The notes under the pieces are model-generated. The model was not told where the DNA came from. It did no database searches and saw only the letters and a program-made list of their open reading frames with translations. Positions 168 through 52,673 of a DNA stretch of 64,000 nucleotides are shown piece after piece. The position numbers and the translations under genes were made by a program. The stretch's first letter is position 1, and the number at the start of each line of letters is the position of its first letter. Source of the stretch: Mantamonas sphyraenae STR306 (Eukaryota > Protista > CRuMs); assembly GCA_026936335.1 (NCBI GenBank), contig JAPMXV010000075.1:1-64000 (forward strand). The letters run 5' to 3'.

Positions 168-436
168 GGTGTGTCCATATCCCGTGTATGTGATGATTCC
201 GGTCTACGTCATGTGAGTTGTGCTTGTGTCTGCTGGCGGGGTGGCTGAGTTGGGAGTTGACATGGGGCAGTGGGCAATGGGTGGGAGTGGAAATGTCGCT
301 GGTGAGTGGCCTGTGTCTTGCAACGCCGCGCAGTCAACACTGCCCATCCGCCTTCAACCAAAGTATCACCAACAGCCACAACACCCTCCACAAGTCCAAC
401 ACAATCCACATACACTCCAGTACCACCACCACCACC

Positions 437-3400
437 ATGGACAAAGACTACTCAAGCACTCCGGAGCAACAACACACACCCAACATCTACCCAGCGTGCG
501 TTCTGCCTTCCACTCCGTTTTCTGACTGCCCGCTCCTCCCGCTTCCTTGCCTCCTCCATGCCTCCGTTGCGTCCCTGCACTCCTCCCCTGCATCTCCACT
601 ACCCCATCACCACCGTTGCTGCCTTCTCCGCTCTTCTCCGATCCCATCTCCCCTGTCACTGCCCTCCCCGTGGCCACTTTTCCGCGTCTGCCAATCTCCT
701 CCGTTTTTCCCTCCCTGCTCGTTCCAGCCTCCCTTCACCCCCGCTTCTGCTCTGACGGCGTCCGTTCCGCCTTCCGCTCACCGTTCCCACTCCGCCCTGC
801 CCCTCCGCGTCTCCCCACAGCTACGGGTATATGGTCCCTCCAATGGCTGCCCAGCCGTTTCCGAACGTGCTGCCCGTCTCTGGCGTACAAAACCCGTACC
901 AGCACCCACAACCACCCATCATCTGGGTCCCTGTCAACACCCACCCCCAGCAGCACCACGCATATGCTCATCAGGGCCACCCATACTACGCCTACCCTCC
1001 TCCGCCGCCTCCTCAGCCGCGACAAACCGCCCAGATGCGCTTCGCTCAGCCTCCGTCCCACCCTCCCCCTGCTCAACTCACCACAAACCACAATCGCGTC
1101 CCGAAACGCGTCAGCCCTGCCTTTGTGGGCATCACACGGACTACATCTACCACCACAACGTCCTCCTCCTCCCACCAGGCCACACGGCAGACCGGAGACA
1201 GCGACGACGACGACGCAGACCAAGACACACACACACATGACACTGGCGACGTGGAGGACCTGATGTTCCTGAACTTTGGCCACCGTGAACCACGGTCAGT
1301 CCCCAGCAACTCAGAGTGGATGGCCAGCTCATGGATGGAGGCGTCCGAAGAAGACGACGAGGCAAACGACGCAACCCAGCAGCACGTGGACGACGAGTTG
1401 GACACTCAGGGCCCACTCAGCTTTGCAGACACTGGTGATGCCATGGATGAGGAGTACATGCCGCAAGACGACAGCGACGACAACACAGACGACATGGAAC
1501 AGGAGGACACGGACGAGTGGCAGCCGAGGCGCACAAGTAGAGGCCGCACACGACGAGGATACCACGCCAGTCGACTCACTGGTTCACACTCGATGGAAGG
1601 CAGCGGGCAGCGCAGGCTCAGGGTCACGGCTGGCAGTGGCAAAGAGGCAGGAACGTCGAGCACACTGGCAAGGAGGGCCAAGAACGGGGACAACGGCGCA
1701 CTTAAGAACGCAGGGGTGTACAAGAGGAACAAGTTGCCAGATGTTGTTGCGCGCAAAGGGTGGTCGCAGAACTGGCGCAGTGAAGAGCGCAGCCACAGCA
1801 ACAAGAAGGAGCACACGGCACTGCTGAAGCACATGCACACTATTGCTAACGAGCATCCCATCGACGTCATCCCCGACCTCATGACCCTGCAGGCCCGTGT
1901 TTTGGTCTGCCATGGCACACTGAACACGCTGGTCCGACAGATTCAGCTCGCTCTGGGCAACATTCCCCTCTCCCAGGGCGACATGGCACTCTGCCTCACC
2001 CTTCTCGGCCGTGACATGGATCCACATGCGTGCAGCAATGCCATCCACGACGCCGGTCTGGCCATGGGTGTGACAGAGGCTGGGTTGAAGGTGTGCTGGC
2101 TGGAGGAACCACACGACCACGGCGACACCAACTACGCCCTCCTCCACCTGCTCATGGCAGAGATGGACACCCTTGGCAACAGGCCCCATCCCACCACCTG
2201 GAAGGAGCACAAGCAGACCCAGCTGTGGCTGCAGAAAGCACGACGCCCCGCTGACAACGACAGCGACCCACACTGGACACAATGCGACTACGACCACCAC
2301 CTCACCACCACCAACGTGGACAAGTGGCATCCTGTGTCTGTGCGCAGTGGCTGGAGCTCATCCTCAGACGAGCGTGGCAGCTGCACAGCGCGGGAGTTCC
2401 AGACGCTGCTGGCACACATGAAGGCACGCGCAGCCAAGAACCCTCGCCATCAGCACACACACGAGCACCAGGCACTGCGTGAGCTGATCAACAACGGCAG
2501 CATGAATTCCCTGGTGCGACACATCATCCTGGCACTGGGCAACGTTGGCGTGCCGCCTGTCGACCTGGCTTTCTTTGTCCGTCTTCTGAGGCCACACCTC
2601 ACCTACAAGCAGGTTCGCGTTGCCATCAAGGACAACCTCACCTGCGGTGCCACCTCCCTCTCCCTCAAGATCGCCTGGCTCGATACCCCCCAACCTAGCG
2701 ACGCCACACTGCACACCCTCCTGCACACCCTCATCGACCGCATCACACCCCACATCACCACCCGCCCCACCACCACTGACGCCGTCAATGCCCTCGACAT
2801 CCCCGAGCTTGTTCTCCCCGAGCCCACAGGGGAAGAGATGATGGCCACGGAGGATGGATTGCCAGATGGCGTTGTGCGCAGTGGCTGGACGCAGTGGCGC
2901 AAGAGCGAGCGCAGCCACAGCAACAAGAAGGAACACACGGCACTGCTGAACCACATGCACGCTCTGGCCAATGAGCATCCCGTCGACGACATCCCCGACC
3001 TCACGACCCTGCAGGCGCGTGTTGTGGTCTGCCATGGCACCGTGACCACGCTGGTCCGACAGATTCAGCTCTCTCTGGGCAACATCCCCCTCTCCCAGGG
3101 CGACATGGCCTTCTGTCTCACCCTCCTCGGCCGTGATATGGATCAACATGCGTGCAGCCTTGCCATCCGACACGCTTGTCTGGCCATGGGTGTGACAAAG
3201 GCTGGGTTGAAGGTGTGCTGGCTGGAGGAGCCACACGACCACGGCGACCCCAACTACGCCCTCCTCCACCTGCTCATGGCAGAGATGGACACTCTCGGCG
3301 ACAGACCCCATCCCACCACCTGGAAGGAGCACAAGCAGACCCAGCTGTGGCTGCAGGAAGCACGACGCCGTGCTGACAACGACAGCGACCCACACTGGAC

Positions 3401-4040
3401 GCAATGCGACTACGACCACCACCTTACCACCACCGAGGTGGACAAGTGGCTTCCAGAGTCTGTGCGCAGTGGCTGGAGCAGTGCCAATCACGGCGACGAG
3501 CGTGGCAGCTGCACGACGCGGGAGTTCCAGACGCTGCTGGCACACATGAAGGCACGCGCAGCCAAGTGCCCTCGCCATCGGCATGCAAATGAGCACCATG
3601 CACTGCGTGAGCTGATCAACAACGGCGATCTGCTGTCCCTGCTGCGACACATCATCCTGGCGCTGGGCAACGTTGGCGTGCCGCCTGTCGACCTGGCCTT
3701 CTTTGTTCGCCTCCTCAGGCCACGACTCACCTACAGGAAGGTGCAAGGTGCCATCAGCCACACCCTCACCCGCGGTGTCACCTCCCTCTCCCTCAAGATC
3801 GCCTGGCTTGACAACCCCAATCCCAACGACGCCACACTGCACACCCTGCTCCACACCCTCATCGACCGCATCACACCCCACACCACCACCCGTCCGACCA
3901 CCTCCGCACTCGTCAACGCCTACCCCATTCCCCCCTTCACCCTCCCCAAGCGCAAAGACCCTTCCTCCTCCTCCTCCTCCTCCTCCTCCTCATCATCATC
4001 ATCATCATCCTCCTCCTCCAAACGCCAACGCCTCGAATGA
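437..4040 (+). CDS. Subtelomeric protein with 4 copies (A-B-A-B) of an uncharacterised ~140-aa winged-helix-like domain and a C-terminal NLS-like motif
   Basis: ORF 831-4040. Predicted first exon 437-495 joins in frame through a GTGCGT...CCCCACAG intron (496-820; GC|C TAC GGG TAT ATG). Low-complexity P/Q and acidic N-terminus, two near-identical ~375-aa two-domain blocks, ends in poly-Ser KRQRLE. Confidence 0.8.
1735..3920 (+). repeat. Intragenic tandem duplication, period ~1122-1128 bp
   Basis: GAGCGCAGCCACAGCAACAAGAAGGA at ~1785 and ~2907; GACGAGCGTGGCAGCTGCAC at ~2367 and ~3495. Confidence 0.9.
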
Positions 4041-4512
4041 ACCCTTTAATCTAACCTCCGGGATCTCGACATCATGTTGCCTGCACACGCTTCCATCCAA
4101 ACGCACCCAATGCCAATCCAAACTCGTGCCAGCGCGCCACCGCACGGAATACAACATCCTGACAGCGTACGTCCCTGCAAATCCGCATACTATGTCCCCA
4201 CACCCGTTTATACCGTTTCAGCCGCCCCATTGGTTCATGCATACCAACACGTCAGCACCCACCGCCATTCTGCATTCACCCGTTTGTCCATGCAACTTGG
4301 TAACTGCATCCGTGCCACTCACACCCCGCATCTACCACCTGCAGCACAGGGATGCACAGTTCGCGTGTTGCACCTGCCGGTACACGAGCGAATCCCTCTG
4401 CAAGGTACGCCCCTCCAGCTCCTGGCGCATGTGTCCCAGGGACCCCATATTCCCCTCGCTGACACGTCAACCCGCACAACAATGCACGCACTCACCCTTC
4501 ACCAGTGCGTCC

Positions 4513-7500
4513 ATGGACCTAGAAACCCCTGTCAACACCTCTCGGCGTGCTGCACGTCGACGACCTACCTCATCTAGTGGTGGTACGGGTCTTTGGAAAC
4601 CAACCACCTCCGATTTTCCAGCTGACGGCGATGACACCCGCACAACACGCTCAGTTGCTTATGCCGACGAGCACCATGCCATCACAAACCTCGTGCACGC
4701 ACTGGCCGAGAGCAACCCCCTCCCAACTCTCTCAGAGGACCAGCTGCACCGCGCAAAGCTTGCGTCATCGCCCACGGGCATGCACAACACCATCAAACGG
4801 GTCCTGCTGGCCCTGGGCAATCCGCCCCTCCCTGCCTTCCACATTTGCCTGTTCGCCTGCCTCGTGACACCTGACTACGATCCACAGGCAGTCAACACAG
4901 CGCTCGGCTCCTTCGCTCACAGCCTTCACTACGGCGTCTCAGACTCCGGTCTGCGTCTGATGTGGCTGAAAGAAAACCACACTGACGACGACGAAGAAGA
5001 GGACCCCGTTGCCTATTCGTACATCCTTCACCTGTTGGACAGCAGCTTGCAGGACCTCTCCGAGCAGCCACAGGAAATCGACGACATCAAACGCCTCCTC
5101 TCAACCCGTAGCAACTGGGCCCCAGCCATCTCCACCGAGGGCTCGTGGCCTCGCTACTCCGGACGCAACCACTGTGATCAAGCAGAGTACGTCGAACTCG
5201 TCGCATACGTGCACGACCTGGCTGACAAACATCGGGGCACCGACATCGACGACGCTGTACCGGCCAATCTGTCCGTTCGCTCGCTTTTGCGCCACGTCTT
5301 TGTAGCTGTCGGCAACGTGCCTCTCCCTCCGTTCGAGGCTGCCCTGTTTGCGTGCATCATCCAACCCGACGTCGAACCCCAGCAGTGCCGCAACCGACTG
5401 AGTGACATGCTCGTCAGGGGCGTCACCGACACAGATCTCAAGGTTGGATACCTGTCGTGGGAGCACGTGTCATCTACGCCTTTCATTCCAGCCATCCTGA
5501 AGGAGTTGGACGACCGCCTGACCTCGTCGACCTCGCCGCCGACGACGCTGGAGGAAATCAGTGACATGGTCAGCTCCACATCCGTCACGCCAGACAATCC
5601 AAGCTCTGATATGGTCATAGAGGACACAGTCGGCGTCGCTGCGGCTCCGTGGCTCCTCTCGCCACCACCGGAGTCTGGATGGCCCAAGAAGGGGCCTCGC
5701 GAACACTGCAATCCGGACGAGTACCGCAGTCTATGCGCGCACATTCAGCGTATTGCTTCAGCACAGCAACCCACCTACGCCGACTACGAGGCGCTTGCCG
5801 ACGATATCCCGAACCATGGCGCCCTTGGACTGATGCGCCTGGTGTTTGTCGCGCTCAACTTCACGCCCCTTCCTCCCTTGGAGCTCTCTTTATTTGTGCG
5901 CATGCTCAATCCGGCATACACGACGCAGCGTATCCGCAAGTCAGCCGTCATCGGCGTCCACGGAGTTTTCAAAAACCATCTCAAGCTCGCCTGGGCTGTG
6001 CCAAAGGACGAAGACACATTCTACCCGGCCATTGTCCATCGCATCGCACACTGCCTCTCCATGATCGAAGATCAAATCGTCACCTTTGAAGATGCAGACA
6101 GTGCAGTGTTTGGGCATCTCACCGACTCGGCCGCAGAAATTCACGCTGAAATATCCACGTCTCCGAGTACCATGCCGACATGGCCTCCGAAGCACACACC
6201 GGCCTTTTCGAGGAGCCTGCGCAAGGCTGCCAACGAGTCTGAACTGCAGGCGCTCACAGCCCACATCCGTCGCATCACCATCGACCACCCAGTCACCTGG
6301 AATGAGCTTCGATTCCTTTTCCACATGTTCGACGGCAGCACGGTGCACGACGTTGTCGCTGCCATCTTTGTCTCCCTGGAAAACGTGCCGCTGCCGCACG
6401 GCACCCTGGAGCACTTTGTACAGATTCTGGGCCCGGAGTTCAACCCGACCACTTTTCGCAATTTCATCACTGGCAACCTCATACAACATGCCACCGACGA
6501 CGGCCTCCTGCTCTACACCTACCCTGCCGCCGCCGACGAAGCAGAGTTTTCACCAGGCATCGCCCACACGCTCCTCCGGCGCCTTTCGGTTGCCCCGTCG
6601 TCCTCTGCGGAAACGACCGATGACAGGGACGACTCGGTGGTACGGGTCGACGACAGTGACGACGGCATGGACATCCAAGACAGCCCAACGGCCTCCACAG
6701 CCATCTGGCCGCCCACCGTGTTCGACATGGGCATCTACTCTCCAAGGAAAATGCGAAGCAAGGTCACCCCGGGCGAGTTTGCTGCCCTCAAATCATACAT
6801 CCGCGGCATCACCCTCGCCCACCCTGTGTCACAAGCGCAGCTCGACGAGCTCCCTGACATGGCTGAAGGCAGTATGGTCGAAGAAATCGTTGCCGCCATC
6901 TACGTGGCGCTGGACAACACGCCGCTCCCTCTCTTTGAGCTTGCCCGCTTTGTCCACATCCTCGACCCCACCGTCCGACCCACTGATATGTCCATCATCT
7001 CCAAGCAAGCGCTGAAACCAGTGCGCACACTCGACAACCTGCGCCTGTTTACGATGCCGGATGCACACATGCACGCTGACGGTATCCCTGCGATCGCACA
7101 CTACCTGCTGGCGCATTTAGAGCGTGTGGATAGACCGTGCGCGTCACTGGACTCTGCCAACGCCCACACAACTGCCTCGGCTACGTCCAGCTCAACCTCC
7201 TCCTCATCCTCCTCATCCTCCTCCTCAACTACCATTACTACCACTACCACCACCTCCACCTCCTCCTCCTCTTCCTCAGTCCCTCCAACGTGGCCTCCCG
7301 AGCACCAGCCATTCTCGAAGAGGACGGGTATCCTAACCTTGCGCAAGGCTGCCAACGACGCAGAACTGCAGGCAATCACAGCCCACATCCGCCGCATCAC
7401 CATTGCCCACCCGGTGACCCAAGAGCAACTGGACGACCTGCCCGATTTGATCGACGGTTGCACGTTGCGAATCGTGGTTGCCGCCATCTTTGTCGCCCTG

Positions 7501-10500
7501 GACAACATCCCGCTCTCCAGCCGAGAACTGCAGCAGTTTGTGCACGTGCTTGCCCCCATCTTCAAACCGAAAACAGTGCAGCGCTTTGCGAGTGACTATT
7601 TGCGGGGCACCGCCACCGACGACGGCCTCCTGCTCTACTCGTTCCCGACCGCCAAACAGGAAGCAGACTTCTACCCGAGCATCGCGCACACACTCCTCAA
7701 GCACCTCTCACGACACGTGCCCACTGTAAAAGACGAGATGGATGCCCAGCGATCCGCGCCCAACCCACCCGCGTGGCCACCCGCGCTCACCGACCTGTTC
7801 AACCGCGCTTCAAACGCACGGACCGCCGTTGCCGACGCTGAGTTTGCCGCACTCACAGACCACATCCGCCGCATCACCCTCGCCCATCCTGTGTCACAAG
7901 CGCAGCTCGACGAGCTCCCGGGCATGGTCGATGGGACCATCGTCCACGACATTGTTGCCGCCATCTACGTGGCCCTGGACTACACGCCGCTCCCTCTCTT
8001 TGAGCTTGCCCGCTTTGTCCACATGCTCGACCCCACCGTCCGACCCACGGATCTGTCCAACTTTTCCAAACAACATCTGCAGCGGGTGAGCACGATCGAC
8101 AACCTGCGTCTGTACACGATGCCGGACGCCCACAAGCACGCAGACTTCATTCCAGCGATTGCGCACCACCTGCTGGCACGGCTGGCGCACGTGGATGGAC
8201 CGTGCACCAAGCTGGCCTCTGCCGCCGCCACTCCGTCCACACAGCCGATCACAAACACACCAGGCGCATCTGCCTACTGGCCTCCAAACCACTCGCCCCT
8301 CGATGCCCAAGGTGATTCCGTGTCCCTGCGCTCCGCCGTCACTCCGGACGAGCTCAAGTCCCTGTTGGACCACGTGCGTCACGTGGCCAAAGCACACCCT
8401 GTTTCAGCAGCCGATTTCAGCGAGCTCCCCGACCTGGTTTACGGCAGTGATTTGCAAGAGGTCGCTTTGGCCATCAGTCTGGCCCTTGGCAACGTTCCTC
8501 TGCCGTTGATTGAGCACATCCGCTTTGTTTGCATGATCTGTCCTCAAACGAACTCCCAGTACATGTCCTACTTCATCAAGCACGAGTTTGACGCCTTTGT
8601 CACCGACGACAACTTGGTGCTGTACCATCCGCCCAACGACGCGGCGACAGAGGTGCATTACACGCCTGCCATTGCCCATCACATCCTGGCACATCTGCAG
8701 CACGTGGATGGACCCGCCACCGTGGTGGCCCGCCTCTCGCAGCTGCAGTTTCCTACCCCAGCCCAGCCCGACCTCCGCGCAGCGCCTTCATCATCATCAC
8801 CATCCTCCTCCTCCTCCTCCTCCTCCTCCTCCTCCTCCACCACCACCACCACCTCCTCTTCACATCCCCTGACTTGGCCACCGACCCTACATCCAAACAA
8901 CCCAAACACTGCGGTGAGAAACCCCCGCATGTCGGCCAACACTGCTGAGTTTGCCGCACTCACAGACCACATCCGACGCATCACCCTCGCCCATCCCGTG
9001 TCCCAAGAGCAGCTCGACGAGCTCCCGGGCATGGTCGACGGCACGATGGTCTACGACATTGTTGCCGCCATCTACGTGGCCCTGGACAACACGCCGCTCC
9101 CTCTCTTTGAGCTCGCCCGTTTTGTCCACATGCTCGACCCCACCGTCCCGCCCGCTGATCTGTCCAACTTTTCCAAACAGTACCTGAAACGTGTGACCTC
9201 CACCGACGGCCTGCGCCTGTACACGATGCCCGGCGCCCACAGGCACGTTGCTTTCACCCCTGCAATCGCACACCACCTGCTGGCGCATCTGGAGCACGTG
9301 GATGGTCCGTGCACCACTCTGGCATCCGCCAGCACCCACGACGTTGTCACACCCACCGCCACCATCACCACCCCCGTCTGGTCTCCCACGATCACAGAGA
9401 CAACCGATACCCTGAACGATATCAGGCACGCACGAGTGCTCCTCACCGCCGAGGAGCGAGAGCAGGTCGCCGCCCTCATCGACTCGATGGCCAATGCCAA
9501 TGTGCCCACCCACGCAGACTACCTGAACTACAACGACCTCTGCGCAAACACAGACCATGCTGTGATCCACCAGAGCGTCTTCAACGCTGTCAACAACACT
9601 CCCCTGCCGGATCGCTACCACTTGTTCTTCTGCTTGACCATCAACTCCACCATCCGTCCGAAGCAGCTGGTCAACCACATGAAGACGCACTGCCGCTTTG
9701 GATGGACCGACTCCGGCATTGGCGTCGCTATGCCTCGAACCTCTAGCCGCGACCACTTCAACCCGGTTGTCGCCTATCGCCTTCGAGACGTGCTCGCCTC
9801 TACAACGCCGCCCGAATCCCGCGCAAGGGAGACCCTGCAGGCGCTCGACTTGCATCGGCTGCCGCCACATCCTGCGCCTAGCACACACCCTGTGCGCGAG
9901 GACGATACCACCCACCTGGCGGTGTGGACTCCCGTGATGGCATCCACGAAACCCACCGCGCCACGCTTCACCCTCACCAGCCTCGAACGCACCCAAGTCA
10001 GAAACTACATTGACCGCGTCGCCGCCACCATGCGCAACCCCACGGACGAGGACTACGAGCTGTACGCATCCATCAAGATCGCACGTGTTGCGTTCGACAC
10101 CATTTTCGGCTCGCTGGGCAACCTGCCGACCCTGGTCGTCATCCTTTTTGCCTCGTTCTTCCTCCAAAGAGCGCCAACTTCCCTCAAGAACTTGATGGAG
10201 ACCTATGTCAACCTCTCCTACACTGCGAGTGCCCTCCAGGTGGCCTCTCTGAAAAGGCCCAAACCAGAATGCTTCAACCCAGTCGTTGTTCAGCGCATCA
10301 AAGACTGCCTCGACGTCCTCTCCGAATGGCCTCGGGGCTTGTCCGACGTGGAAAGGGTGATGAACGAGCACCGTGCCATCTTGCCCACGCCGCCCCAACC
10401 GAACCAACGAGGATCCGCTCAACAGCTCTGGTCGCCCACAATTCACAAGCAGGGATGGCGTGGGGCCGAGCGCTACTGTACTCCGAATGAGTACAAAGTT

Positions 10501-13314
10501 GTTGTGGCCACCATCGTGCGCAAGGCCAACCTGGCCCGCTCGCGAACCTCCTCCACAAACGACGTGGAGGCAATCGACGACCTGCTTCACAATGGTTCGG
10601 CATCCGAGGTCGTCCAGCACCTTTCCAACGCCCTGGACTGCATGCCTCTTCCGTACGTACAGTACGCGTACTTTGTGCACCTTGTGTCGCCACACCACGC
10701 CATGTCCAGTGTGCAGGAGGCCATCTCCAACGACCTCGTCCACGGCACGGATTCCACTGGGCTTCGCTTGGCCTGGGTCACTCCTGAGCATTCCATGGGC
10801 CCTCCGAGTCCACACCTGCTCCATGTGCTCGCCAGCAAGTTGCAGGGGGCGACCCGAAACCCCCTCACTGAGCAAGATCTCCGTGCTATTTTCAACGCAT
10901 TCTCCTCCCCCTCCTCATCATCATCCTCATCCTCATCCTCATCCTCATCCTCCACATACCCTTCTCGCTCCTCCTCGAGCCCCGAGCCCCCCGCCTCCCC
11001 ACCCACGCGCCGCTCCTCCCACGCCACCGGTGGTGTGTGGGAGGTTCAAAAACTGCGTGACTCGTGCAACGACCACGAATACGCCGTTCTGATCGAGCAC
11101 ATGCGTGCGACGGCACACAAACACAACGCAGAGCGCCATGCGAGCCATCACGCCAAACAACTGCGCACACCTACCCTACCCATGCTCCTGCGACATATCC
11201 TTCTGGCGCTGGACGGCCAGGCGATCCCTTCCATCGAGCTGATGCACTTTGCCCTTCTCCTGCGGCCCCACTGTGACCTTAAGGAGGCCAACGAGACAAT
11301 TCCCACCGTCTTTATCGTCGTGCCCACCGTCCACGGTCTCCGCCTCGTCCGAGAACCTTTTCCGGACAGGTATCCCATGCCCATGTATGGCCTCCTGCAT
11401 CTCCTCATCGACGCTTTGGGTCGCAACCAGCGGTACGTCCGCCCGACCTCCTTCGACGCCCTCGTTGCGCTGCAGGCACAACAGAACGAGCGCGGAATGA
11501 CACGAGACGCTGGACGGTGGTCACCCAACGTCACCAGCCATGAGTGGTCCCTCGTGTCCAAGGAGCGTGACTGCTGCTCGCTGGAAGAGTACGAATCTCT
11601 CGTGCGCTACATCCGCCGTGTCACAGAGCTGCATCCCATGGACACCATCACTGGCCCTGAGCGAAGGGCAGCCGAGCACCTCGTGCACACCGGCACCATG
11701 GCAGACATCATGCGCCAGATCTCCATGGTCCTCGAGTGCACGCCCATCCCTCCCGTCGAGATGTGTTTCTTCACCTGGCTCTTTCGCACCAGCGTCGACA
11801 CCCACGTCAGCAAGCCTGCCTGCCAGGTTCTCTTCTGCACAGGGGTCACTGACGACGACTTGCGTGTCGTCTGGCTCGAGTCCCCGTCCCGCTTCGGACG
11901 CCCCCTGTACCACTTGGCACACTCTCTACTGTACATGATCACCCAGATGCGCCGTCACCCTGTCAGCTACGAAGACCTCACCCTGCTCAAGATCGATTTT
12001 GCGCGATCACAACCCGCGCTCTCCTCACCGCCTTCCAATCACGACGCATCCTCCTCCTCCTCCACGACTACAACCACCGCCACAAAGATGCCCTCTCCCC
12101 GGCGCAAGAAGAGGCCATTCAAGCTGGACAAGAGCCTTCTCCTCTACGACGAGTGCCGCTATCCCAAGTTTATTCCCCCGGAGTATGTCCACACCCTCAT
12201 GGTGGACACTGCAGAAGCAATCTTGCACAAGTACCCGTCCAAACATGCCACAAACGCCGATCGCCAACGCCTTGACGCATTGATCAATGGCAAAGTGGCC
12301 AATTTGGCAGACGCCATTGCCCTTCTCCTGGGTGGCCAAGACGTGTGCATTCCTGTGATCAACATCTGCCACTTTGTGTCCATCCTTCGTCTCCGCAAGG
12401 GCAAAAAGAAGGTAGTTGTCGGTCCCCGCGGCACCATGAGCAACTTTCAGCTGTGCACCACCAAGCCCTATGGCAGGAAACGTGCTTCAGTCCCGCTTGC
12501 GGCAAGCGAGGGTCGCCTGGACATGGACAAAACCGAACAGCAAACTCCGTTGTACCTGCTCGCGCAGGAGATTGTGGACGTTGCCAAGATGTTCCCTGGG
12601 CCGCCCAGCGCGGTTGCGGAGATGCCGGTGAAGCCGCTTCGTCGGCCGCAGCAAGTGCAGGTGCCTCACTGGCTTGAGTTTGTCGCAGACTTGGAAAAGC
12701 AACCCAAGAAGCAGTACTGGTCCAACGACACACGGTTTGAGTGGACCAGCATCGAGTACCGCTCCTTCATGGCATTCGCGGTGGAGGTTGCTTCCGCCCA
12801 CCCTCTACGCAACCTCCACCACGAGCACAAGGACGTTCTGGACATGTTTGACTGTTCCGAGAACGTCAATACCCTCGTGACCAACCTGTGCCTGTTGTTC
12901 ACAGGCACCCCGGTGCCAGCCATCGCCATTTGCACTCTGGCTCGTCTCCTCGTGCCCGAACACTCCTGTGATGTGTTGATGCGTGCCATCGCACGCACTC
13001 TGTCCACCCAAATGACTTTGGGCAAACTCAGGGTCTGTGTCCCCTACTCGCTGCATATGCATCCATCGCCCCTCTACACAGTCCTGCACATTGCCCTCTC
13101 CCGCACCAAGTACCTGTCGCTCTTCCCCAGGAACAGCCACTTTGTCGACTCCATTCGATCCGTGGCCATTACGTCCCCCGAGCAGGTCATTGCAGTGCTG
13201 ACCAAGAAGAACTCAGGCACAAAACGTGCCCGTGACGATGATGACGATGATGACGACGACGACGACGACGACGACGAATTCTCCAACAGCAAGCGACAAC
13301 GCGTTTCCCATTAG
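4513..13314 (+). CDS. Giant (~2900 aa) subtelomeric protein with ~16 copies of the same uncharacterised domain, poly-Ser/Thr linkers, acidic + KRQR C-terminus
   Basis: Uninterrupted ORF 3673-13314; likely start is ATG 4513 (MDLETP), although upstream exons are possible. Recurrent pattern W-x-P...R...E(Y/F)xxLxxHI...HP...IxxALxNxPLPxxExxxFVxxLxP...T-xx-(G/N)L(R/K)L...(P/Y)xIxHxLL. Ends in DDDD...SKRQRVSH. Confidence 0.85.
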   Translation: MDLETPVNTSRRAARRRPTSSSGGTGLWKPTTSDFPADGDDTRTTRSVAYADEHHAITNLVHALAESNPLPTLSEDQLHRAKLASSPTGMHNTIKRVLLALGNPPLPAFHICLFACLVTPDYDPQAVNTALGSFAHSLHYGVSDSGLRLMWLKENHTDDDEEEDPVAYSYILHLLDSSLQDLSEQPQEIDDIKRLLSTRSNWAPAISTEGSWPRYSGRNHCDQAEYVELVAYVHDLADKHRGTDIDDAVPANLSVRSLLRHVFVAVGNVPLPPFEAALFACIIQPDVEPQQCRNRLSDMLVRGVTDTDLKVGYLSWEHVSSTPFIPAILKELDDRLTSSTSPPTTLEEISDMVSSTSVTPDNPSSDMVIEDTVGVAAAPWLLSPPPESGWPKKGPREHCNPDEYRSLCAHIQRIASAQQPTYADYEALADDIPNHGALGLMRLVFVALNFTPLPPLELSLFVRMLNPAYTTQRIRKSAVIGVHGVFKNHLKLAWAVPKDEDTFYPAIVHRIAHCLSMIEDQIVTFEDADSAVFGHLTDSAAEIHAEISTSPSTMPTWPPKHTPAFSRSLRKAANESELQALTAHIRRITIDHPVTWNELRFLFHMFDGSTVHDVVAAIFVSLENVPLPHGTLEHFVQILGPEFNPTTFRNFITGNLIQHATDDGLLLYTYPAAADEAEFSPGIAHTLLRRLSVAPSSSAETTDDRDDSVVRVDDSDDGMDIQDSPTASTAIWPPTVFDMGIYSPRKMRSKVTPGEFAALKSYIRGITLAHPVSQAQLDELPDMAEGSMVEEIVAAIYVALDNTPLPLFELARFVHILDPTVRPTDMSIISKQALKPVRTLDNLRLFTMPDAHMHADGIPAIAHYLLAHLERVDRPCASLDSANAHTTASATSSSTSSSSSSSSSSTTITTTTTTSTSSSSSSVPPTWPPEHQPFSKRTGILTLRKAANDAELQAITAHIRRITIAHPVTQEQLDDLPDLIDGCTLRIVVAAIFVALDNIPLSSRELQQFVHVLAPIFKPKTVQRFASDYLRGTATDDGLLLYSFPTAKQEADFYPSIAHTLLKHLSRHVPTVKDEMDAQRSAPNPPAWPPALTDLFNRASNARTAVADAEFAALTDHIRRITLAHPVSQAQLDELPGMVDGTIVHDIVAAIYVALDYTPLPLFELARFVHMLDPTVRPTDLSNFSKQHLQRVSTIDNLRLYTMPDAHKHADFIPAIAHHLLARLAHVDGPCTKLASAAATPSTQPITNTPGASAYWPPNHSPLDAQGDSVSLRSAVTPDELKSLLDHVRHVAKAHPVSAADFSELPDLVYGSDLQEVALAISLALGNVPLPLIEHIRFVCMICPQTNSQYMSYFIKHEFDAFVTDDNLVLYHPPNDAATEVHYTPAIAHHILAHLQHVDGPATVVARLSQLQFPTPAQPDLRAAPSSSSPSSSSSSSSSSSSTTTTTSSSHPLTWPPTLHPNNPNTAVRNPRMSANTAEFAALTDHIRRITLAHPVSQEQLDELPGMVDGTMVYDIVAAIYVALDNTPLPLFELARFVHMLDPTVPPADLSNFSKQYLKRVTSTDGLRLYTMPGAHRHVAFTPAIAHHLLAHLEHVDGPCTTLASASTHDVVTPTATITTPVWSPTITETTDTLNDIRHARVLLTAEEREQVAALIDSMANANVPTHADYLNYNDLCANTDHAVIHQSVFNAVNNTPLPDRYHLFFCLTINSTIRPKQLVNHMKTHCRFGWTDSGIGVAMPRTSSRDHFNPVVAYRLRDVLASTTPPESRARETLQALDLHRLPPHPAPSTHPVREDDTTHLAVWTPVMASTKPTAPRFTLTSLERTQVRNYIDRVAATMRNPTDEDYELYASIKIARVAFDTIFGSLGNLPTLVVILFASFFLQRAPTSLKNLMETYVNLSYTASALQVASLKRPKPECFNPVVVQRIKDCLDVLSEWPRGLSDVERVMNEHRAILPTPPQPNQRGSAQQLWSPTIHKQGWRGAERYCTPNEYKVVVATIVRKANLARSRTSSTNDVEAIDDLLHNGSASEVVQHLSNALDCMPLPYVQYAYFVHLVSPHHAMSSVQEAISNDLVHGTDSTGLRLAWVTPEHSMGPPSPHLLHVLASKLQGATRNPLTEQDLRAIFNAFSSPSSSSSSSSSSSSSSTYPSRSSSSPEPPASPPTRRSSHATGGVWEVQKLRDSCNDHEYAVLIEHMRATAHKHNAERHASHHAKQLRTPTLPMLLRHILLALDGQAIPSIELMHFALLLRPHCDLKEANETIPTVFIVVPTVHGLRLVREPFPDRYPMPMYGLLHLLIDALGRNQRYVRPTSFDALVALQAQQNERGMTRDAGRWSPNVTSHEWSLVSKERDCCSLEEYESLVRYIRRVTELHPMDTITGPERRAAEHLVHTGTMADIMRQISMVLECTPIPPVEMCFFTWLFRTSVDTHVSKPACQVLFCTGVTDDDLRVVWLESPSRFGRPLYHLAHSLLYMITQMRRHPVSYEDLTLLKIDFARSQPALSSPPSNHDASSSSSTTTTTATKMPSPRRKKRPFKLDKSLLLYDECRYPKFIPPEYVHTLMVDTAEAILHKYPSKHATNADRQRLDALINGKVANLADAIALLLGGQDVCIPVINICHFVSILRLRKGKKKVVVGPRGTMSNFQLCTTKPYGRKRASVPLAASEGRLDMDKTEQQTPLYLLAQEIVDVAKMFPGPPSAVAEMPVKPLRRPQQVQVPHWLEFVADLEKQPKKQYWSNDTRFEWTSIEYRSFMAFAVEVASAHPLRNLHHEHKDVLDMFDCSENVNTLVTNLCLLFTGTPVPAIAICTLARLLVPEHSCDVLMRAIARTLSTQMTLGKLRVCVPYSLHMHPSPLYTVLHIALSRTKYLSLFPRNSHFVDSIRSVAITSPEQVIAVLTKKNSGTKRARDDDDDDDDDDDDDDEFSNSKRQRVSH

Positions 13315-13384: not shown

Positions 13385-16300
13385 CTATGCTTTGTTCCCA
13401 CGCAAAGACCGCAGCTCAATCTCCGCGCCCTCTCCACCCTCGCCCACACCCACTCCCAACGCGTCCAGAAACACACGTCGTCCAGGCTCGTCTTCATGGC
13501 TCACCTTGAGCCAACGTGCCACCCGTTTGCCCCAACGGCGATCCACTGCCTCCAAGGCCTCCACGACCACTTCCCGCGGACCCTGGATTTTCTCCAATCC
13601 CTGCGCCGCCACCCACTCTCTGCACGCACGCATCTCCTCGCACCGCATGGCGATGACGCGTTGCCGCACAGACTTGAGCCGTGTCGCACGCACCATCTTC
13701 TCCAGTGTTTCCATCAGGCGCTCAAACTCGTCGCGTGTGCGTTCGTCCAGCGAAGACTCTTCAAACCGTGCACGCACGGCCCCCACCAGCTCAAACATCA
13801 CAAAGACCACGCAGGTAATCAGCACCATCACCAACACAATCAACGCAGTCCACTCCCACGCGTCCCCTGCGCCAGTATCGCTCCCGGTGACAAACACCAC
13901 ACCCAACATGAGCACAAGGACACTCAATGCAAGCAGAGTGGCCTCGAGTTGGTTTGCAGCTGCGCTTTGGTACGGATCAAAGCGCAGCTGAAGGATGGCT
14001 GCACCCATGAGCACCACCATCCCCAGCAACGCCTGCAACGCAGGGCGCGACGTGGCAAACAGTTGCACAGCGACCACCATGCCCTTGCGCAGCATCACCA
14101 CCGATTCGTACCAATAGAATTTGGTCGCAAACTTGCTGAAACTCGTGGAGAACTTCTCCTGGAACGCCGCGCGCTCTCGCGCAGCCAAACTGCGAGCACT
14201 CATCAACACAGCAAGGATCGCTAGTGGGATGCCCAGCACGTACAGGACGGCAAACACAGAGGCTGCTGGCATAAGACGTGCCTGGAGGCCCGTGTCCTGC
14301 CAGCATCGTTCGTCCGGAAGCTTGTCCAGCACAAACAGACCCGGGGCAATCTCGGTGCAGTCAAACACGGACAGCACCGTTGCGCACAGCGGAATGTACA
14401 ACAGAGTGACAGTGAGCACCATTTCGTTGACCACATAGCGTAGCACTTGCTGGTCGACCACTTCCGCCTCCACAAACAGTCGAGAGAGCTGGTGCCTGGC
14501 CATCGACAGGGCGAACGACACTTCGGTGCTCCCGGACGGCTCGGAACAAAACGCAGGGTGGGCCTGACGGAATCGCTCGCCATAGATGCGCACAAGGTTG
14601 GCATGGAGGAACTGCAGGATGGTGCGCACAACGATGCCACAGAAAACCAGCAACGGAAGTGCCATGACCACGTAAAACACATCCTCGTTGGTCCAACCAC
14701 GGCACTCGGGAGCCACGGTCTGCAGGTCAAAGTTGGCCAGGGTCAGCCAACGCAGCGTGGACTCGACACGCTGGGGCCAGGCGAGTCTGTACGACGCAAA
14801 CGTCGCCAGCACCTGCAGGTGGTTGATGACCAGAGTGGTCACCTTGACACGGGCCACCCCTCGTGCCTGTCGTCGCACCCACTGCAGATAGGCCACAAAC
14901 AGAGCCAACAGCAGCAGCACCGAGCCTGCGTCTGCCCCTGCCTCCGGACACGCCTGACACGCCTCGCCCAGCTTGTACCATCCTTTCTTGCACACGCCAC
15001 ACAGACGTCCAGTGAACCCTTCGGCACAGGACGACTTTGCGCCTCCAAGACACGCTGCACGCGTGGCGCAGCGCACAAACGTCAGATCTTCGGTTTGGAA
15101 GAATCCCGCTTGGGCGTGCGGCGGTTCGCCGAGGCCAGGACACACGGCCCCCTCGGGACATGCAGTGCATGCTTGGCCAGGTTGGCCATAGAATTGGACA
15201 CGGCACACACAGTCGAGGGTGGACCGTGCTGTGCCTATGGACGGGGGCACAAACGAGTTGAGAGGACACAGGATCTGTTGGCTGAGCACCTCCAGGGTGG
15301 ACGCAGCAGATGTGTTGTACCCCTGACCTCCATCAAGGCTCAGAGACACTTGGTAGTCGCCACGTGCAAGGGTGGACGGTGTTTCCACCTGTACTTCAGA
15401 GTCGGTGACGGATTGCGCCGCCAGGACGACCGATCCCAGACGCACGACGACTGAGCCCGTGTCGACAAACCCCGACCCCAACACACGCAGGGTGACACGC
15501 ACCCCAGGGGCCACCTGGGTGGGTTCCACACGAAGAACCGTGGGGAAGGACACCAGTCTCACAGACATCCCCGTGGCCACATACTGTTGCCCATTGTTGG
15601 CAAAGGTCAATTGCAACGCAGAGGCGGTGCCAGTGTAGCTTGGCACGCGTACACGCACGCCTCCGCCCACGGGTGTCACTCCGACGTTCGCCGTCCAGCC
15701 CAGACCATCCAACACCCGCATGCTCATTTCTGTTGCAGGCACGTTGGCATAGCTGCCCACAAGCACTACCTCCGTTCCTCCTGTCCTGTACACCGCCGCA
15801 GGCGAGATTCCTGTCCACGCCGGTGTGGCGTAGCGAGTGAACACGCCGGCGAGCACAAACGACGCGCCGTCGTTGCTGCTCACCTGCACCTGAACCTGCC
15901 CCACCTCTGTGGGTGTGGGCGCTGCAAACGGCGTCGTCACACGGACCTCTGTCCCCTGCGTGCTGCTCGCGTTGGCCAGCAAGCTTGGTTGCTGGCCCAT
16001 TCTCACACGGAAGATGCCTTGACCCAGCAAGCCGCTGCCCACAATCCTCACCTGTGTGCCGCCTGTAACGGGTCCACTCGTTGGCTGCACTTGGTCCACA
16101 CGTGGCGCCACCACATCCATGATGTGGCTGCCGTATACTTGTTGGCCATTCAGACGCACCCCCACACGCACCTGAGACGCGGACAGACTCGGTGCTTCGC
16201 ATACCACCGTGGCACCTGCGTCTTCCACCCATGCGGGCACCGCGGTGGTGTCAAACATCACTTCCAGCTGATCGGTGGCCACAAACCCGTCGCCACGCAC

Positions 16301-19300
16301 GCGCACCTGCAACCTGCCACCGCTGCTTCGGTTTGTCGCCGATGGAAGCAAAGCAGGCAATGTTGTGGGCCACACAGAATCCACTCGCGGCTCCTGACTC
16401 ACATGCAGCCACGCTGCCTCGGTAGCGCCCGCGTCTTTGCCTCCGTTGCACGTCACGGTCACGCTGTGGTTGCCAACGGGCAGCACGGGCGTTTCGCATT
16501 GCACCTGCGTGGCACTGATGAACGTGGCTGCCACAGTGGCCAACTGGCCAAACTGACACTGCAGTTGGTTGCCAGTGTTGCGAAAAGCACGCCCCATCAC
16601 AGTCACCTGCGTGCCCCCAGTGATGGGTGCCCAGCGCGGCATGGACTTGTCCAAGCCAAACACAAACAACGACTGCCATTCACTCCACTGTTGCAAGTTC
16701 ATCGACACAGACACCGTCCACTCGCCCGTCAAGTTCACCGCCTTTGGCAGCGCAATCTCTGCACGAACAGCCGACACTCGCCGCCCCTGGAGAGGACCCA
16801 TCTCCACGCCGCCGCCACCACCACCGTTACCGTGGCGCAGTCGCATGTACACGGGCTCGCCTGTGTCATCAAATGCACGCAGTGCCTCAGGCTGAAGCAC
16901 GAGTGTGGCATTGTGATTTTCGGGAAACACGCCGTCCAGCACTTGCGGCTTTCCCGGGTCCGAGTACAGTGTCACTTGCAGTGCATTGGGATTGGCATTG
17001 TACGTGGAGTGACCAGCGGGTTGCACAAGCACAGTGATGGCCGAGACCTGTCCCAAAGGCGGGTTGAACACGGATTGTGTCTGCCGCACCAGCCGCACCT
17101 GCAGCACATATTCTTCCCCATCCAACACGTACTCAGCACTCCACTTGTTGAAACTATTGGACATGGAGATGGTGGGATTGGCGAGGTTGGCCAGCCAGCG
17201 CCCTCGCAGCGTCAACAACGTCGCCTTGGCTGGATCCTGCTCCAACACAGCCAATTTGGGCTCCAAACTGTCAAATGAGCTGTTGTAGCGATACATGGTG
17301 CCCGCCAGCTCCCAGTTTTGCCCATTCACGGCAATCCAAACGTTCTGAAGCCGTGCCCTGTCCACCGCGGGCAGGATGCACCACACTCCGCCGTCGTTTT
17401 GGTAAATGCCAGTCACCTCCTGCTCGTCGTACCTACAGCGCAGCTGACTTTGATCGTATGCCACAATGCCAGTGCCGTAGTACATGAGAAAACCTGCCAA
17501 CGTGCCGATGCTCGTTGCGTTTCGTGTCTGTCTGCTCCGATCCCAATGCACACGGTATGCCTGCACCACGGGCGCCTGCAACGGATAGCTGCCGTTCACG
17601 TCCATGTGCAGCGAGTATGTCCCCACGTGTGGCAACGGCGGTGTCACACATGTGGCACGGTGTGTTGTGCCGTTGACACGCGTGCATGCCAAGGTGTAGT
17701 CACCCACCGTGGAATTGCGCAACACAGCCTGCATGCCTGGCTGCCACGCACTCTCCACCGTCAGCACCGTGTTTCCAGTCACGTGCACGTACGTGGTCGA
17801 CGTGATGGCCGTGCGCGTAAAATTGCACTCGGTTGCACCCTCATGCAAGGCATACAAGGTCGCTGGACACGCTGTGCATGTCTGTGCCCCAAACATGTCA
17901 CTGAATGTGCCCACTGCACACAGTTTGCAATGCGGACCTGCTCCGTATCCGCTGGCATCCCACGTCGAATGCATCGATTGGCTGCCTGCGGTGCATGCGT
18001 CACGCACCACCGCCCCAAACATAGCCTGTTGGCCCGCCGCCGGCGTATTGGATCCACTCACCAACACTCCGTCCGTGCTTCCAAACACCATGGCCGTGTC
18101 GTCCGCGAGAACCGCCACGCAGGTGGATCGATCCCCACCCGAGCTGCCAAAACCACGCGCCCACATCACCGCCCCTGCTCCAGACACATTCACCTGTGCC
18201 ACAAACACATGGGAGCTGCCCTGTGCGCTCACGCCTTCAAAGGTCGACGCCGCCAATCCCGTCACCAACACACGCCCGCTTTCGCGTGTGTCCTCCGCCA
18301 CATCCAATGCCACTTCGTTTCCACTGCCTCCCATCGTTACTTGGCCCATCCATGTCCCGCTTCCAGCCGCAAACATCGCCACCCACATCTCCTGACCCTT
18401 GCCAGCGACGTATGCTTCGCCAACGGCCACCACCGTTTCCCCCACCAAGCTCATGCGATGAAACGCATCTTGGTTGTGCTTTTGCGACACGTACGACCAC
18501 ACGCGTGCTCCTGTGCTCCCATCCACAGCCATGACCCACGCATCTCGCGTCGACACCCCTGCATCGCTTCCTCCCACCGACGTCCCGTGCAGATTGCCCA
18601 CACTCAGCTCCCCGACGAGATACACACGACTGCAATCCCCGCTGGCGTGTGAATCCAACACAATCGTGTCGTTCGCATGGCTCACTCGCCACATCTCCAC
18701 TCCGTTGGCTGCAAATCTCCAAAGCTGCTGCGGCCGCGACTGCCCATTGTCCGTTTTGGCAGCCACAAAATAGTCCCCATTCGCACACATGGCCAGCGTT
18801 GCATGTGTGTCAAAGGTAGTCGAATCCACCAGCCGGATCCTGTGCACGCCAACAATGTCAGATCCTGCGTGGATTGTCATAACACAAATGCGCTCCAAAG
18901 CCAAACCTACCAGGCCGGTTCGCCCGTCTGTGCATCCAACTTTGCCACAAACGCGTCGTATCCTGCCGGTGTGGCACCCAGGAACGCTCCGTTGGTGTGT
19001 CCTGCCATGAAAAGCGAGCCGTTGTGGAAGCGTAACGCAGAACACACTTGAGAAAACGGCGCCTCAAACACGCGTCGACGCACAACTGAGCCATCCCGCT
19101 TCATCCACGTCAGTTGGATGTCGTACGAAGCCGGGTCGTTGGGTGTGCTTGTTTTGACACTGGCAAACACGACTGTGGAGGCGTCCACCGGAACCGAGCG
19201 CTGGTTTTCCACTGTCCCGGTCAGTGTTGGTCCATCCTGCTTGACCCACAATGCCCCCACATGTGCACACAGTAGCCATTGTACCAACAGCAGCAACACC

Positions 19301-19320
19301 GTCCACCTGTGCACGCCCAT
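13385..19320 (-). CDS. Large surface receptor-like protein: signal peptide, beta-propeller repeats, Cys-rich (GCC2/GCC3-like) modules, multiple IPT/TIG domains, C-terminal multipass membrane domain
   Basis: Exon 1 19320-18911 has the signal peptide MGVHRWTVLLLLVQWLLCAHVGA. Intron 18910-18840 (GTAGGT...CACAG) joins in frame to ORF 13385-19045. IPT motifs such as PTSGPVTGGTQVRIVGSG and APITGGTQVTVMGRAF; CxxCPxGxxC and GFTGRLCGVC motifs; then ~9-10 hydrophobic helices. Confidence 0.85.
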
Positions 19321-33427: not shown

Positions 33428-34858
33428 TCACTTGGGTAGCGGCAGCGGCGAATTGTCGCTGCCTGCAAGGTTGTAGAGGAGGACAAAGGATGAGAGCAGG
33501 AGAGAAAACACGGTGCTCAGCAGCGGCGTGGTGATCTCGATGGCGTTGAAGAGACGGACGCCGGTGACCCTTTGGGTTTGGGCGTTCATCATGACGTCGA
33601 CCTCTTTGGTGTCGGGCAGCTCGACGCCGTCCTCGACAGTGACAGAGAGGTTGCGCAGGCGTACGTGTTGTGCACCAAAGGCAGAATTGTGGCCCGAGTT
33701 GTCTTCGTTCGCATCGTTCTTGCGGCAACGGCGAGGCGGGACGGCGACGAGGGCAGCAAACTGCTCGTGGCATTGGCGAAAGGCAGTGTGAAGGCGTGCA
33801 CAGAAGACGAGGAAGGCCACGGAGATGAGGATGTTGTAGACGAGCCACCACAAGTCGGAGAGGATGGTAAAGAGGTCGTCGCCGCCGACGCGAAGGGTGC
33901 GACGAACGAGGATGACGACGAGGAGCATGGCAGAGGCAGGGACCCAACCGCCAATGATGGCACCAAAGGTTTTGTTGTACCACATGACGGAACGGGTGAC
34001 ACTGAGGTGCACCCTGCGGTAGGTGTCAAAGGAGTGTGCGTCGAGGACGAGGATGTTGCTCAAGTGGTTGCGCATGACGGTGAGCTGGCGGGTCCAGACG
34101 AGGATGGGTGGGATGAGAGGGGCAGCGGTAAGGACCCATCCTGCAGTGTTGAATGGCACCACCAGGTTGATGAGGGTGGGCAAGAGGGTGGGGTTGCCAG
34201 GGAGGAGGTTGAGGGGCCAGTAGGAGGGGCCGTCGACGTTGAGAAAGGCCCAGACGGTGCCGATGACGGAGTTGACGACAATGCAAAAGATGAGGAAAGG
34301 GTAGAGGAGTCGCATCATGCGGTCGATGTGTTGTGCGCGTGCTTTGTCGTTTGCAACGAGGGTGGAGACGAGGGAAGGGAACCAGTCGGGCGGGAGGGTG
34401 GACCAACACAGCAGGACGACGGAACCGGTGGCCACCAACCAGATGACCATGACAGCCATGTAGGTGGATTGCTCACGAGGGGTGGGAAGGACCAACACAG
34501 TGAGCACCACACGCACCATGCGAAACACAAGCAGGAACAACACCACCCGCGCAAAGTAGGCATAGCGAGGCCAGTACCGACTGCGTTGGAACAGAAACAC
34601 ACACAGCAGTGTGTTCACCCTCCTTGTCCATAGGGGCAGTGTTGCCACCGTGCACTTTTGATCCAAGGACATCGAGGGCCGCGCGTCGTGGGCCTCGTCG
34701 TCGTTGGAAGAACCCATTTCCGTCGCCATCAGCAACGCCTCGTTTTCCCTGGGACGCAACCCCGTGGATGAGCTGTGTGTCGAGGATGGGGGGGACGATG
34801 ACGTGGTGGACGACGATGAATGTCCACCTCCTTCGTTGGTGATCAGTGGTACGTCCAT
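33428..34858 (-). CDS. Gustatory-receptor-like 7TM ion channel (7TMIC/GRL) paralogue 1
   Basis: Seven hydrophobic segments, no signal peptide; HLSVTRSVMWYNKTFG before TM5; FCARLHTAF after TM6; terminal GVRLFNAIEITTPLLSTVFSLLLSSFVLLYN resembles the GR TM7a/7b signature. Confidence 0.7.
   Translation of the reverse strand: MDVPLITNEGGGHSSSSTTSSSPPSSTHSSSTGLRPRENEALLMATEMGSSNDDEAHDARPSMSLDQKCTVATLPLWTRRVNTLLCVFLFQRSRYWPRYAYFARVVLFLLVFRMVRVVLTVLVLPTPREQSTYMAVMVIWLVATGSVVLLCWSTLPPDWFPSLVSTLVANDKARAQHIDRMMRLLYPFLIFCIVVNSVIGTVWAFLNVDGPSYWPLNLLPGNPTLLPTLINLVVPFNTAGWVLTAAPLIPPILVWTRQLTVMRNHLSNILVLDAHSFDTYRRVHLSVTRSVMWYNKTFGAIIGGWVPASAMLLVVILVRRTLRVGGDDLFTILSDLWWLVYNILISVAFLVFCARLHTAFRQCHEQFAALVAVPPRRCRKNDANEDNSGHNSAFGAQHVRLRNLSVTVEDGVELPDTKEVDVMMNAQTQRVTGVRLFNAIEITTPLLSTVFSLLLSSFVLLYNLAGSDNSPLPLPK

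Positions 34859-52641: not shown

Positions 52642-52673
<32 letters not shown>

Follow-up and report, generated by a model that had tools for sequence, protein, structure and literature searches.

Most known arrays of DNA-binding modules that diversify rapidly belong to animal zinc-finger genes and bacterial TALEs, and most known subtelomeric families that are hypervariable encode surface antigens of parasites. The var and VSG genes, yeast Y', DUX4/D4Z4 and Drosophila HeT-A are telomere-adjacent tandem units that were spread and diversified by ectopic recombination. In KRAB C2H2 zinc-finger genes, positive selection acts on the presumed sequence-reading residues, while the zinc-finger array of PRDM9 evolves in concert by conversion, with diversification confined to the contact residues (PMC6116924). 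The trypanosome retrotransposon hot spot (RHS) genes form a large, mosaic, recombining multigene family of nuclear proteins, only ~30% of which is subtelomeric (PMC7563717). Here we describe a family of chromosome-end genes of the flagellate Mantamonas sphyraenae STR306, represented by gene A in the first 64,000 nucleotides of contig JAPMXV010000075.1 (assembly GCA_026936335.1; contig C75), a stretch referred to below as the window.

The assembly comprises 25,061,354 bases in 78 contigs; it was produced with FALCON, has a GC content of 59.19% and carries telomeres at both ends of 59 contigs and at one end of 14, according to the genome paper (PMC10492846). Paralogues of gene A were found on at least 73 of the 78 contigs. 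A first-pass annotation of the window had proposed a modular DNA-recognition surface under diversifying selection; it had missed what we regard as the main fact, namely that gene A belongs to a large family located at nearly all chromosome ends and homogenised and shuffled by fine-scale recombination. A block search of the genome gave ~405 first-look candidates, which are not copy counts, and 114 scored matches (82-87% identity). On the plus strand most matches begin ~1.7 and ~2.9 kb into a contig, and on the minus strand at high coordinates, so that the genes read inward from the telomere. There are approximately two blocks per gene, and the family size is therefore estimated at ~150-200 genes. 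Family members take the first gene position at very many ends, and many ends bear head-to-tail arrays of a ~3.87 kb unit in one orientation, restarting at window position 343. The similarity between copies stops at or shortly past the stop codon, beyond which the DNA is chromosome-specific, and no poly(A) was seen at the 3' junctions of the copies. The features of gene A and its surroundings are as follows (residues are counted from the Met at nucleotide 831; NLS, nuclear localization signal):

1-167, no strand: telomeric (CCCTAA)n repeats, recognized from the sequence, at the left end of contig C75
168-342, no strand: telomere-adjacent cap, common to terminal copies and missing in internal tandem copies
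343-4040, plus strand: subtelomeric gene unit (~3.87 kb including the spacer in tandem arrays elsewhere)
437-495, plus strand: gene A exon 1, ATG at 437; 59 nt in 31 of 32 copies, the remaining copy being 5'-truncated
496-820, plus strand: gene A GT-AG intron of 325 nt, placed by RNA run X3 and the alignment of copies
821-4040, plus strand: gene A exon 2, with Pro/Gln/His-rich, acidic and Arg-rich segments, units A1, B1, A2 and B2, a poly-Ser stretch and an NLS-like tail
1749-2183, plus strand: unit A1 (arm, two helices, predicted winged-helix core, closing helix)
1764-1784, plus strand: hypervariable N-terminal arm of A1 (residues 312-318; 17 different residues at 313)
1920-1925, plus strand: variable start of winged-helix helix 1 in A1 (residues 364-365)
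2022-2054, plus strand: helix 3 of A1 (residues 398-408; hot codons 399, 403, 406 and 407)
2340-2759, plus strand: unit B1, modelled with a mean local confidence (pLDDT) of 93
2352-2369, plus strand: hypervariable N-terminal arm of B1 (residues 508-513), with in-frame indels
2502-2507 (B1), 3042-3047 (A2) and 3630-3635 (B2), plus strand: homologues of the A1 helix-1 start
2604-2636, plus strand: helix 3 of B1 (residues 592-602; hot codons 593, 596, 597 and 601)
2874-3305, plus strand: unit A2, from the iterated profile
3144-3176, plus strand: helix 3 of A2, from block-to-block alignment
3462-3890, plus strand: unit B2, from the iterated profile
3732-3764, plus strand: helix 3 of B2, from block-to-block alignment
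4020-4031, plus strand: C-terminal KRQR, NLS-like, following the poly-Ser stretch and kept in nearly all intact copies

By the iterated profile, gene A contains 4 units and the adjacent gene B contains 16, in agreement with the 20 repeats counted earlier. An AlphaFold2 (AF2) model of unit B1, built with an alignment including the diverged gene B units, consists of an arm, two helices, three further helices, a beta-hairpin and a closing helix (pLDDT 93, predicted template modelling score 0.88). In a wide structural search it matched almost solely winged-helix domains over residues 58-123 (Z up to 6.2); no full-length match to the whole unit was returned, and the extra helices around the core were likewise unmatched. 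A separate AF2 model of the A-type core alone (pLDDT 74.5) superimposed on the Hop2 winged helix with Z 9.6 (60 of 64 residues, 1.6 A). For this core, 16 chains reached Z >= 8 (including Zur/Fur, FoxP4, MecI and histone H1), Z was still 7.4 at rank 50, and essentially all of the top 50 matches were winged-helix domains; Foldseek gave a probability of 1.0 and TM-scores of 0.6-0.75 (E > 0.03). The three-helix bundle and beta-hairpin wing of the winged helix-turn-helix fold are thus predicted in two models of different unit types. Judging by these models, each unit very probably carries a winged-helix core, as had been proposed at first pass, and the variable helix corresponds to its helix 3.

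Membership in described families was rejected in each case considered: (i) Forkhead (PF00250), with no Pfam match in any of 58 cores and the positions of the N(S/A)IRH motif hypervariable here (a whole-genome scan with the Forkhead profile, run without a positive control, also gave no match); (ii) linker histone H15 (PF00538), with no match to the Linker_histone profile and structural likeness only (Z 8.2); (iii) RHS and MAGE, with no Pfam profile match; and (iv) KRAB-ZNF and PRDM9, with a different fold and no C2H2 fingers, KRAB or PR/SET domain by Pfam.

The two blocks of gene A (~375 amino acids each), aligned over 362 codons, differ by 65 amino-acid and 38 synonymous-only changes. The helix encoded at 2595-2645 differs from its counterpart at 3723-3773 in 9 of 17 residues, and the 26 residues preceding it are identical in amino-acid sequence and carry 6 synonymous changes. 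The A-type helices, the helix-1 starts and the N-terminal arms also differ between the copies in the block alignment, all as described at first pass. The claim that differences concentrate in the helix is borderline for this pair of blocks taken singly (17-residue window with 9 changes, permutation p = 0.048) and holds across 95 other paralogous blocks, the window blocks being left out: the proportion of non-synonymous differences (pN) is 0.272 [0.189-0.364] in helix 3, vs. 0.062 [0.048-0.079] in the other helices and 0.034 in the wing. In these held-out blocks, helix-3 pN is 1.73 times the gene-wide synonymous value (pS).

The full variation set consisted of 99 blocks (97 distinct) from 70 loci which, having been picked as the best matches to the window blocks, may understate the diversity of the family. 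Its hypervariable positions are 313 (arm), 365, 399, 403, 406 and 407 in the A type and 509-512 (arm), 559, 593, 596, 597 and 601 in the B type. The A and B units are 33-36% identical, and four pairs of hot sites are homologous between them (365/559, 399/593, 403/597 and 407/601). Polar sites in helix 3 average ~2 bits of entropy, vs. 0.43 bits at other polar positions, and the variability moment of the helix points 165-170 degrees away from its hydrophobic moment. This periodicity, rather than model coordinates, supports the placement of the variable residues on the exposed face. Residues at the hot sites are Q, N, K, H, R, S, T or D in 69% of cases, with W, Y, F and E together contributing ~2%; codons 403 and 597 each encode 14 amino acids, their first two positions being nearly saturated and the third mostly T. 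Among the 97 blocks, 90 distinct A-type and 93 distinct B-type residue combinations were counted.

Comparison of the codon-aligned blocks gave a dN/dS of 0.54 overall, 0.42 outside helix 3 and the arms, and ~1.07 locally in helix 3; in the arms the local value is 0.72-0.85, with raised local dS. Diversity at codon positions 1/2/3 is 0.68/0.71/0.31 at codon 403 and 0.69/0.72/0.21 at codon 597. When fully neutral codons matched to the four-fold-site spectrum were drawn, at most 0.5% of the draws reached a mean position-1/2 diversity of 0.55 and at most 0.03% reached 0.65 or more (P <= 0.0003); nine observed codons reach at least 0.55, four of them at least 0.65. Since conserved codons inside helix 3 are at background synonymous diversity (0.127 vs. 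0.128 in the held-out blocks), a regional mutation hotspot was ruled out. An adenine-specific mechanism of the kind used by diversity-generating retroelements was also rejected, as all bases vary and no reverse transcriptase was seen.

Tree-based FUBAR/FEL-like tests were downgraded because recombination inflates them (in one of them, kappa for the B segment had probably not converged); recombining null simulations produced 2-8 false sites with a likelihood-ratio statistic above 10. The statistics for codons 403 and 597 (68 and 64, respectively) nevertheless exceed those of all six simulations, whose maximum was 44. Synonymous diversity in the arms equals non-synonymous diversity, indels occur there, and some of the variation in the A arm distinguishes first from later blocks; selection on the arms is less certain on account of this equality and this split. 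The scaffold is under purifying selection. Diversifying selection very likely acts on the helix-3 face; it is firmly indicated at codons 403 and 597, with supportive evidence at several more. The selection postulated at first pass thus stands for a few codons, above all the homologous pair 403 and 597, and more weakly for the helix-1 start and the N-terminal arms, with a helix-wide ratio of only ~1.07. As in KRAB-ZNF and PRDM9, positive selection is confined to putative contact positions within a concertedly evolving module.

The blocks are 89.5 +/- 1.1% identical in DNA. Linkage (r2) is 0.14 below 10 bp and no higher than background past 30 bp, all four gametes are present at ~95% of site pairs, and strong associations between hot sites occur mostly inside one patch. 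The arm is the only part that differs consistently between first and later blocks. The simplest reading is that all modules belong to one pool in which short-tract conversion is frequent, perhaps with a contribution from recurrent mutation on a star-like history. A retroelement origin of the HeT-A/TART or Athena type was rejected, given the absence of RT/Gag Pfam domains and of a poly(A) 3' junction, and the retention of the GT-AG intron.

Several individual loci deserve mention. Blocks are identical on the ends of different contigs (C17:4031 and C71:287603; C70:2867 and C22:229280; C70:1739 and C22:230476), which reflects either very recent end-to-end copying or assembly duplication. At the left end of contig C76 (locus L003:1-200), telomeric repeats are joined directly within exon 1, at the equivalent of window position 443; this is a truncated and healed chromosome end from which the start codon was removed. 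An internal family cluster far from the contig start (C29:75640-102874) consists of plus-strand arrays at 75-86 kb facing minus-strand arrays at 94-103 kb, with open frames of up to 3224 amino acids and many blocks, and resembles either a small unit with two ends or chromosome ends that were rearranged. Some copies are split by frameshifts (loci L004, L005, L034 and L049) and represent either pseudogenes or residual long-read errors.

Of four public sequencing runs compared, one (X3) behaves as RNA: it contains the GT-AG joint of the gene B intron (4405-4505) and has no contigs over the intergenic interval 4140-4336. Over 594-790 it also lacks contigs, whereas the other three runs cover this interval, and past a loose end at 495 its sequence resumes at 821; exon 1 (437-495) and the intron (496-820) of gene A were therefore placed accordingly. 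The donor GT is present in 32 of 32 aligned copies and the acceptor AG in the listed variants. All frameshifting indels between 437 and 830 fall within the intron, and 11 of the 13 indels in the coding part after it are in frame. X3 contigs occur on every coding bin of gene A (965 pieces vs. 939-1456 in the runs fully covering intergenic DNA), contig depth being no measure of expression level and 78 repeat letters at 3955-4032 being skipped in read placement. From the splice joints, the coding coverage and the empty intergenic DNA it follows that members of the family are transcribed and spliced; many copies probably contribute, and that of the window is not distinguishable among them.

The spliced gene A protein has 1092 amino acids. 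By hydropathy scan only, its N-terminus is not signal-peptide-like (hydropathy 0.77), and the top window (1.86) is the buried helix 1-2 core. The proteins of gene A and gene B alike end in the basic, NLS-like KRQR, and the family proteins are, to judge from such sequence traits, probably nuclear. On the same hydropathy scan and C-terminal motif, the subtelomeric surface antigen was dismissed as a candidate. The Arg-rich segment preceding unit A1 (window 1521-1740) is also variable, with greater diversity at codon position 2 than at position 3 and with in-frame indels, and is possibly a further selected nucleic-acid-binding patch.

The family is real, expressed, lineage-restricted and outside every described family. 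Protein searches used a single block or the exon-2 protein, exon 1 being too short for a search at 19 codons. Word-indexed searches, one with a single block and one with the whole exon-2 protein, found no homologue outside the M. sphyraenae genome, and a profile search of 1.84 billion representatives returned two matches, both spurious sums over unrelated repeat proteins. No family homologues were found in JGI metagenome and viral contigs or the ESM Atlas, and Pfam, PHROGs, PDB sequences and BFVD gave no match. Two biofilm metagenome runs (X5 and X6) contain 6-9% of the sampled words of gene A (831-4040), which possibly derive from a related Mantamonas or from low complexity. Term searches of the genome paper found no mention of the family; the same paper states that repeats were masked ahead of gene prediction (PMC10492846), and we infer that this masking may explain why protein databases return no family member. 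Literature searches found no published description.

Downstream of gene A lies an old paralogue, gene B, which is intact, expressed and single-copy. Its start is at 4513, or at 4352, upstream of its intron:

4405-4505, plus strand: GT-AG intron of 101 nt at the 5' end of gene B, spliced in run X3
4513-13314, plus strand: gene B, single-copy old paralogue with 16 diverged units (4618-13122, one of them partial), ending in KRQR

Units 4/6 and 5/7/9 of gene B (window 6175-9309) are internal duplications of intermediate age. Convergent with gene B, on the minus strand, is a large receptor-like gene (13385-19320) with IPT/TIG, DUF7630, Cys-rich and multipass membrane regions by Pfam. Farther inward (19534-59275), Pfam identifies Tudor-SN (SND1), RPAP2/Rtr1, two cyclins, an F-box protein, FAN1, NOP9 and a Myb+JAB (MYSM1-like) protein; the open reading frames at 33431-34942, 36211-37854 and 51003-52727 are without Pfam match.

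As regards function, we put first, with about as much doubt as belief, a repertoire of nuclear DNA readers at telomeres, whose scaffold would be homogenised by ectopic recombination while selected specificity patches are reassorted. The ~150-200 expressed chromosome-end genes would encode probably nuclear tandem winged-helix proteins forming a diversified recognition repertoire; ectopic recombination among telomere-proximal units, not retrotransposition, would homogenise the scaffold and shuffle short specificity patches; and selection would favour new residues at ligand-contacting positions. Less firmly, the ligand would be double-stranded DNA, with helix 3 reading the major groove and the arm and helix-1 start adding contacts, and the low-complexity acidic/Pro-Gln N-terminus might recruit chromatin or transcription machinery. 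The family probably works like the KRAB-ZNF and PRDM9 repertoires, and by analogy with these the most likely driver would be an arms race with mobile or viral DNA. In forkhead complexes, helix 3, the helix-1 start and the N-terminal arm are the usual DNA-facing parts, and in FOXC2 helix 3 the bases are read by Asn118, Arg121 and His122 (PMC6468292). The hot sites show the same i, i+3, i+4 spacing around a conserved Ala-Ile pair, in a register deduced from the pattern. As the hot patches coincide with these parts, the spacing is FOXC2-like and the hot residues are rich in Q/N/K/H and poor in aromatics, the balance leans towards double-stranded DNA as the ligand.

Several observations weigh against such a role. 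Of 99 blocks, 49 have Pro or Gly at site 597 and 13 have Pro at 406, which is odd for a groove-reading helix. The mean net charge is -2.9 for A-type units, which are thus acidic, and +6.5 for B-type units; in gene B, the majority of units are neutral or acidic. The wing is short and has hardly any basic character. Only codons 403 and 597 pass the tree-based tests. The fold is supported by predicted structures, the Foldseek E-values are not significant, and LOTUS, Z-alpha and ESCRT-II, i.e., RNA- or protein-binding winged helices, are among the structural matches at similar Z. Gene B lacks the helix-3 variation pattern: the first-pass annotation had quoted the sequences of units 5/7/9 correctly as further instances of it, but the argument fails, because wing and arm differ as much as helix 3 (units 7 and 9 differ at 2 of 11 positions in helix 3, 5 of 13 in the wing and 8 of 10 in the arm).

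Some of these points would fit an alternative that we consider possible but improbable, in which the selected surface binds proteins or RNA, either as a set of intracellular receptors that recognise nuclear proteins or transcripts of viruses or parasites, or as a self/non-self system, the modules being used as in LOTUS, ROQ, Z-alpha, ESCRT-II or MAGE proteins. The similar Z-scores of RNA- and protein-binding winged helices, the acidic A units, the weakly basic wing, the tolerance of Pro/Gly in helix 3 and the structurally unmatched extra helices around the core are all consistent with it. Protein-binding hypervariable surfaces are typically enriched in aromatics, however, and the hot sites show no such enrichment, being rich in Q/N/K/H; their coincidence with the usual DNA-facing parts of forkhead complexes (PMC6468292) also argues for DNA.

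A bolder form of the DNA-reader repertoire, which we regard as doubtful, is a programmable DNA-recognition system, in which ~400 interchangeable telomeric winged-helix blocks have their patches recombined by short-tract conversion into a near-unique code per gene. If true, a deep-branching eukaryote would possess an adaptive repertoire of readers directed against viruses and transposons, and it would supply modules that can be engineered, with a helix-3 code that can be learned.

It is unlikely that the family is a selfish subtelomeric element or drive system, whose proteins would bind chromosome-end DNA (their own or rival units) and bias recombination or transmission, with target erosion driving the turnover of specificity in a PRDM9- or wtf-like Red Queen process. 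The first gene position at very many ends, the one-orientation head-to-tail arrays, the frameshifted copies and the intense fine-scale recombination inside the unit would be expected of such an element. Yet Pfam detects no nuclease, transposase, reverse transcriptase, helicase or SET domain, the intron is kept without a poly(A) junction, and the old 16-unit paralogue gene B is intact and expressed in single copy. A co-varying non-coding target was also rejected, as the cap, leader and intron of 32 copies contain no hypervariable patch.

A reading without positive selection, under which gene conversion homogenises the family and the patches are exposed residues free of constraint or local hotspots of mutation or conversion, is very improbable: it accommodates the helix-level dN/dS of ~1.07, the lower ratios and raised dS of the arms, the false positives of tree-based tests under recombination and the borderline window pair, but not the low entropy of other polar positions relative to helix 3, the rarity of matched neutral codons as diverse as those observed, the near-background third positions of 403/597 and adjacent conserved codons, or the same positions being hot in two such divergent unit types.

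Compared with known systems, the units resemble the winged-helix DNA-binding domains of the Hop2 N-domain, Fur/Zur, MecI/BlaI, forkhead, linker histone H15 and Z-alpha in their predicted three-helix plus beta-hairpin topology (core Z 8-9.6), and forkhead in particular in the i, i+3, i+4 spacing around a small-residue-Ile pair in helix 3; unlike them, they show no sequence-level match and embed the core between an arm with two helices and a closing helix. Of the telomere-adjacent elements, HeT-A shares the 5'-distal orientation of the Mantamonas unit, which differs from HeT-A/TART in its kept intron and lack of poly(A) or RT. It has no helicase, unlike yeast Y', is hypervariable where DUX4 is homogeneous, and, unlike var/VSG, encodes proteins not of the surface type (NLS-like motif, N-terminus not signal-peptide-like). 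The RHS genes are alike in being a mosaic, recombining, partly subtelomeric nuclear multigene family, but are unrelated in sequence, and PMC7563717 does not describe them as tandem arrays of winged helices in which one helix face is hypervariable.

PRDM9 shares concerted evolution and diversification at contact residues (putative contacts in Mantamonas), but is one locus with a minisatellite and PR/SET, in contrast to ~400 blocks over at least 73 contigs without a catalytic domain. KRAB C2H2 families are likewise large duplicated repertoires of nuclear proteins with tandem modules and a conserved scaffold bearing selected reading residues. The Mantamonas modules, by contrast, are ~145-residue winged helices instead of 28-residue fingers; the genes usually have 4 units in fixed A-B order, lie at chromosome ends and carry no KRAB or known effector domain; and the copies freely exchange short patches instead of diverging as lineages. 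The family makes up ~2% of the M. sphyraenae gene count, provided that some 200 copies are intact. Its natural variants share a near-constant scaffold and so form a library with which a winged-helix specificity code can be tested directly. If the proposed function is correct, a free-living CRuMs flagellate would have invented a reader repertoire independently, with another fold and another engine of diversification.

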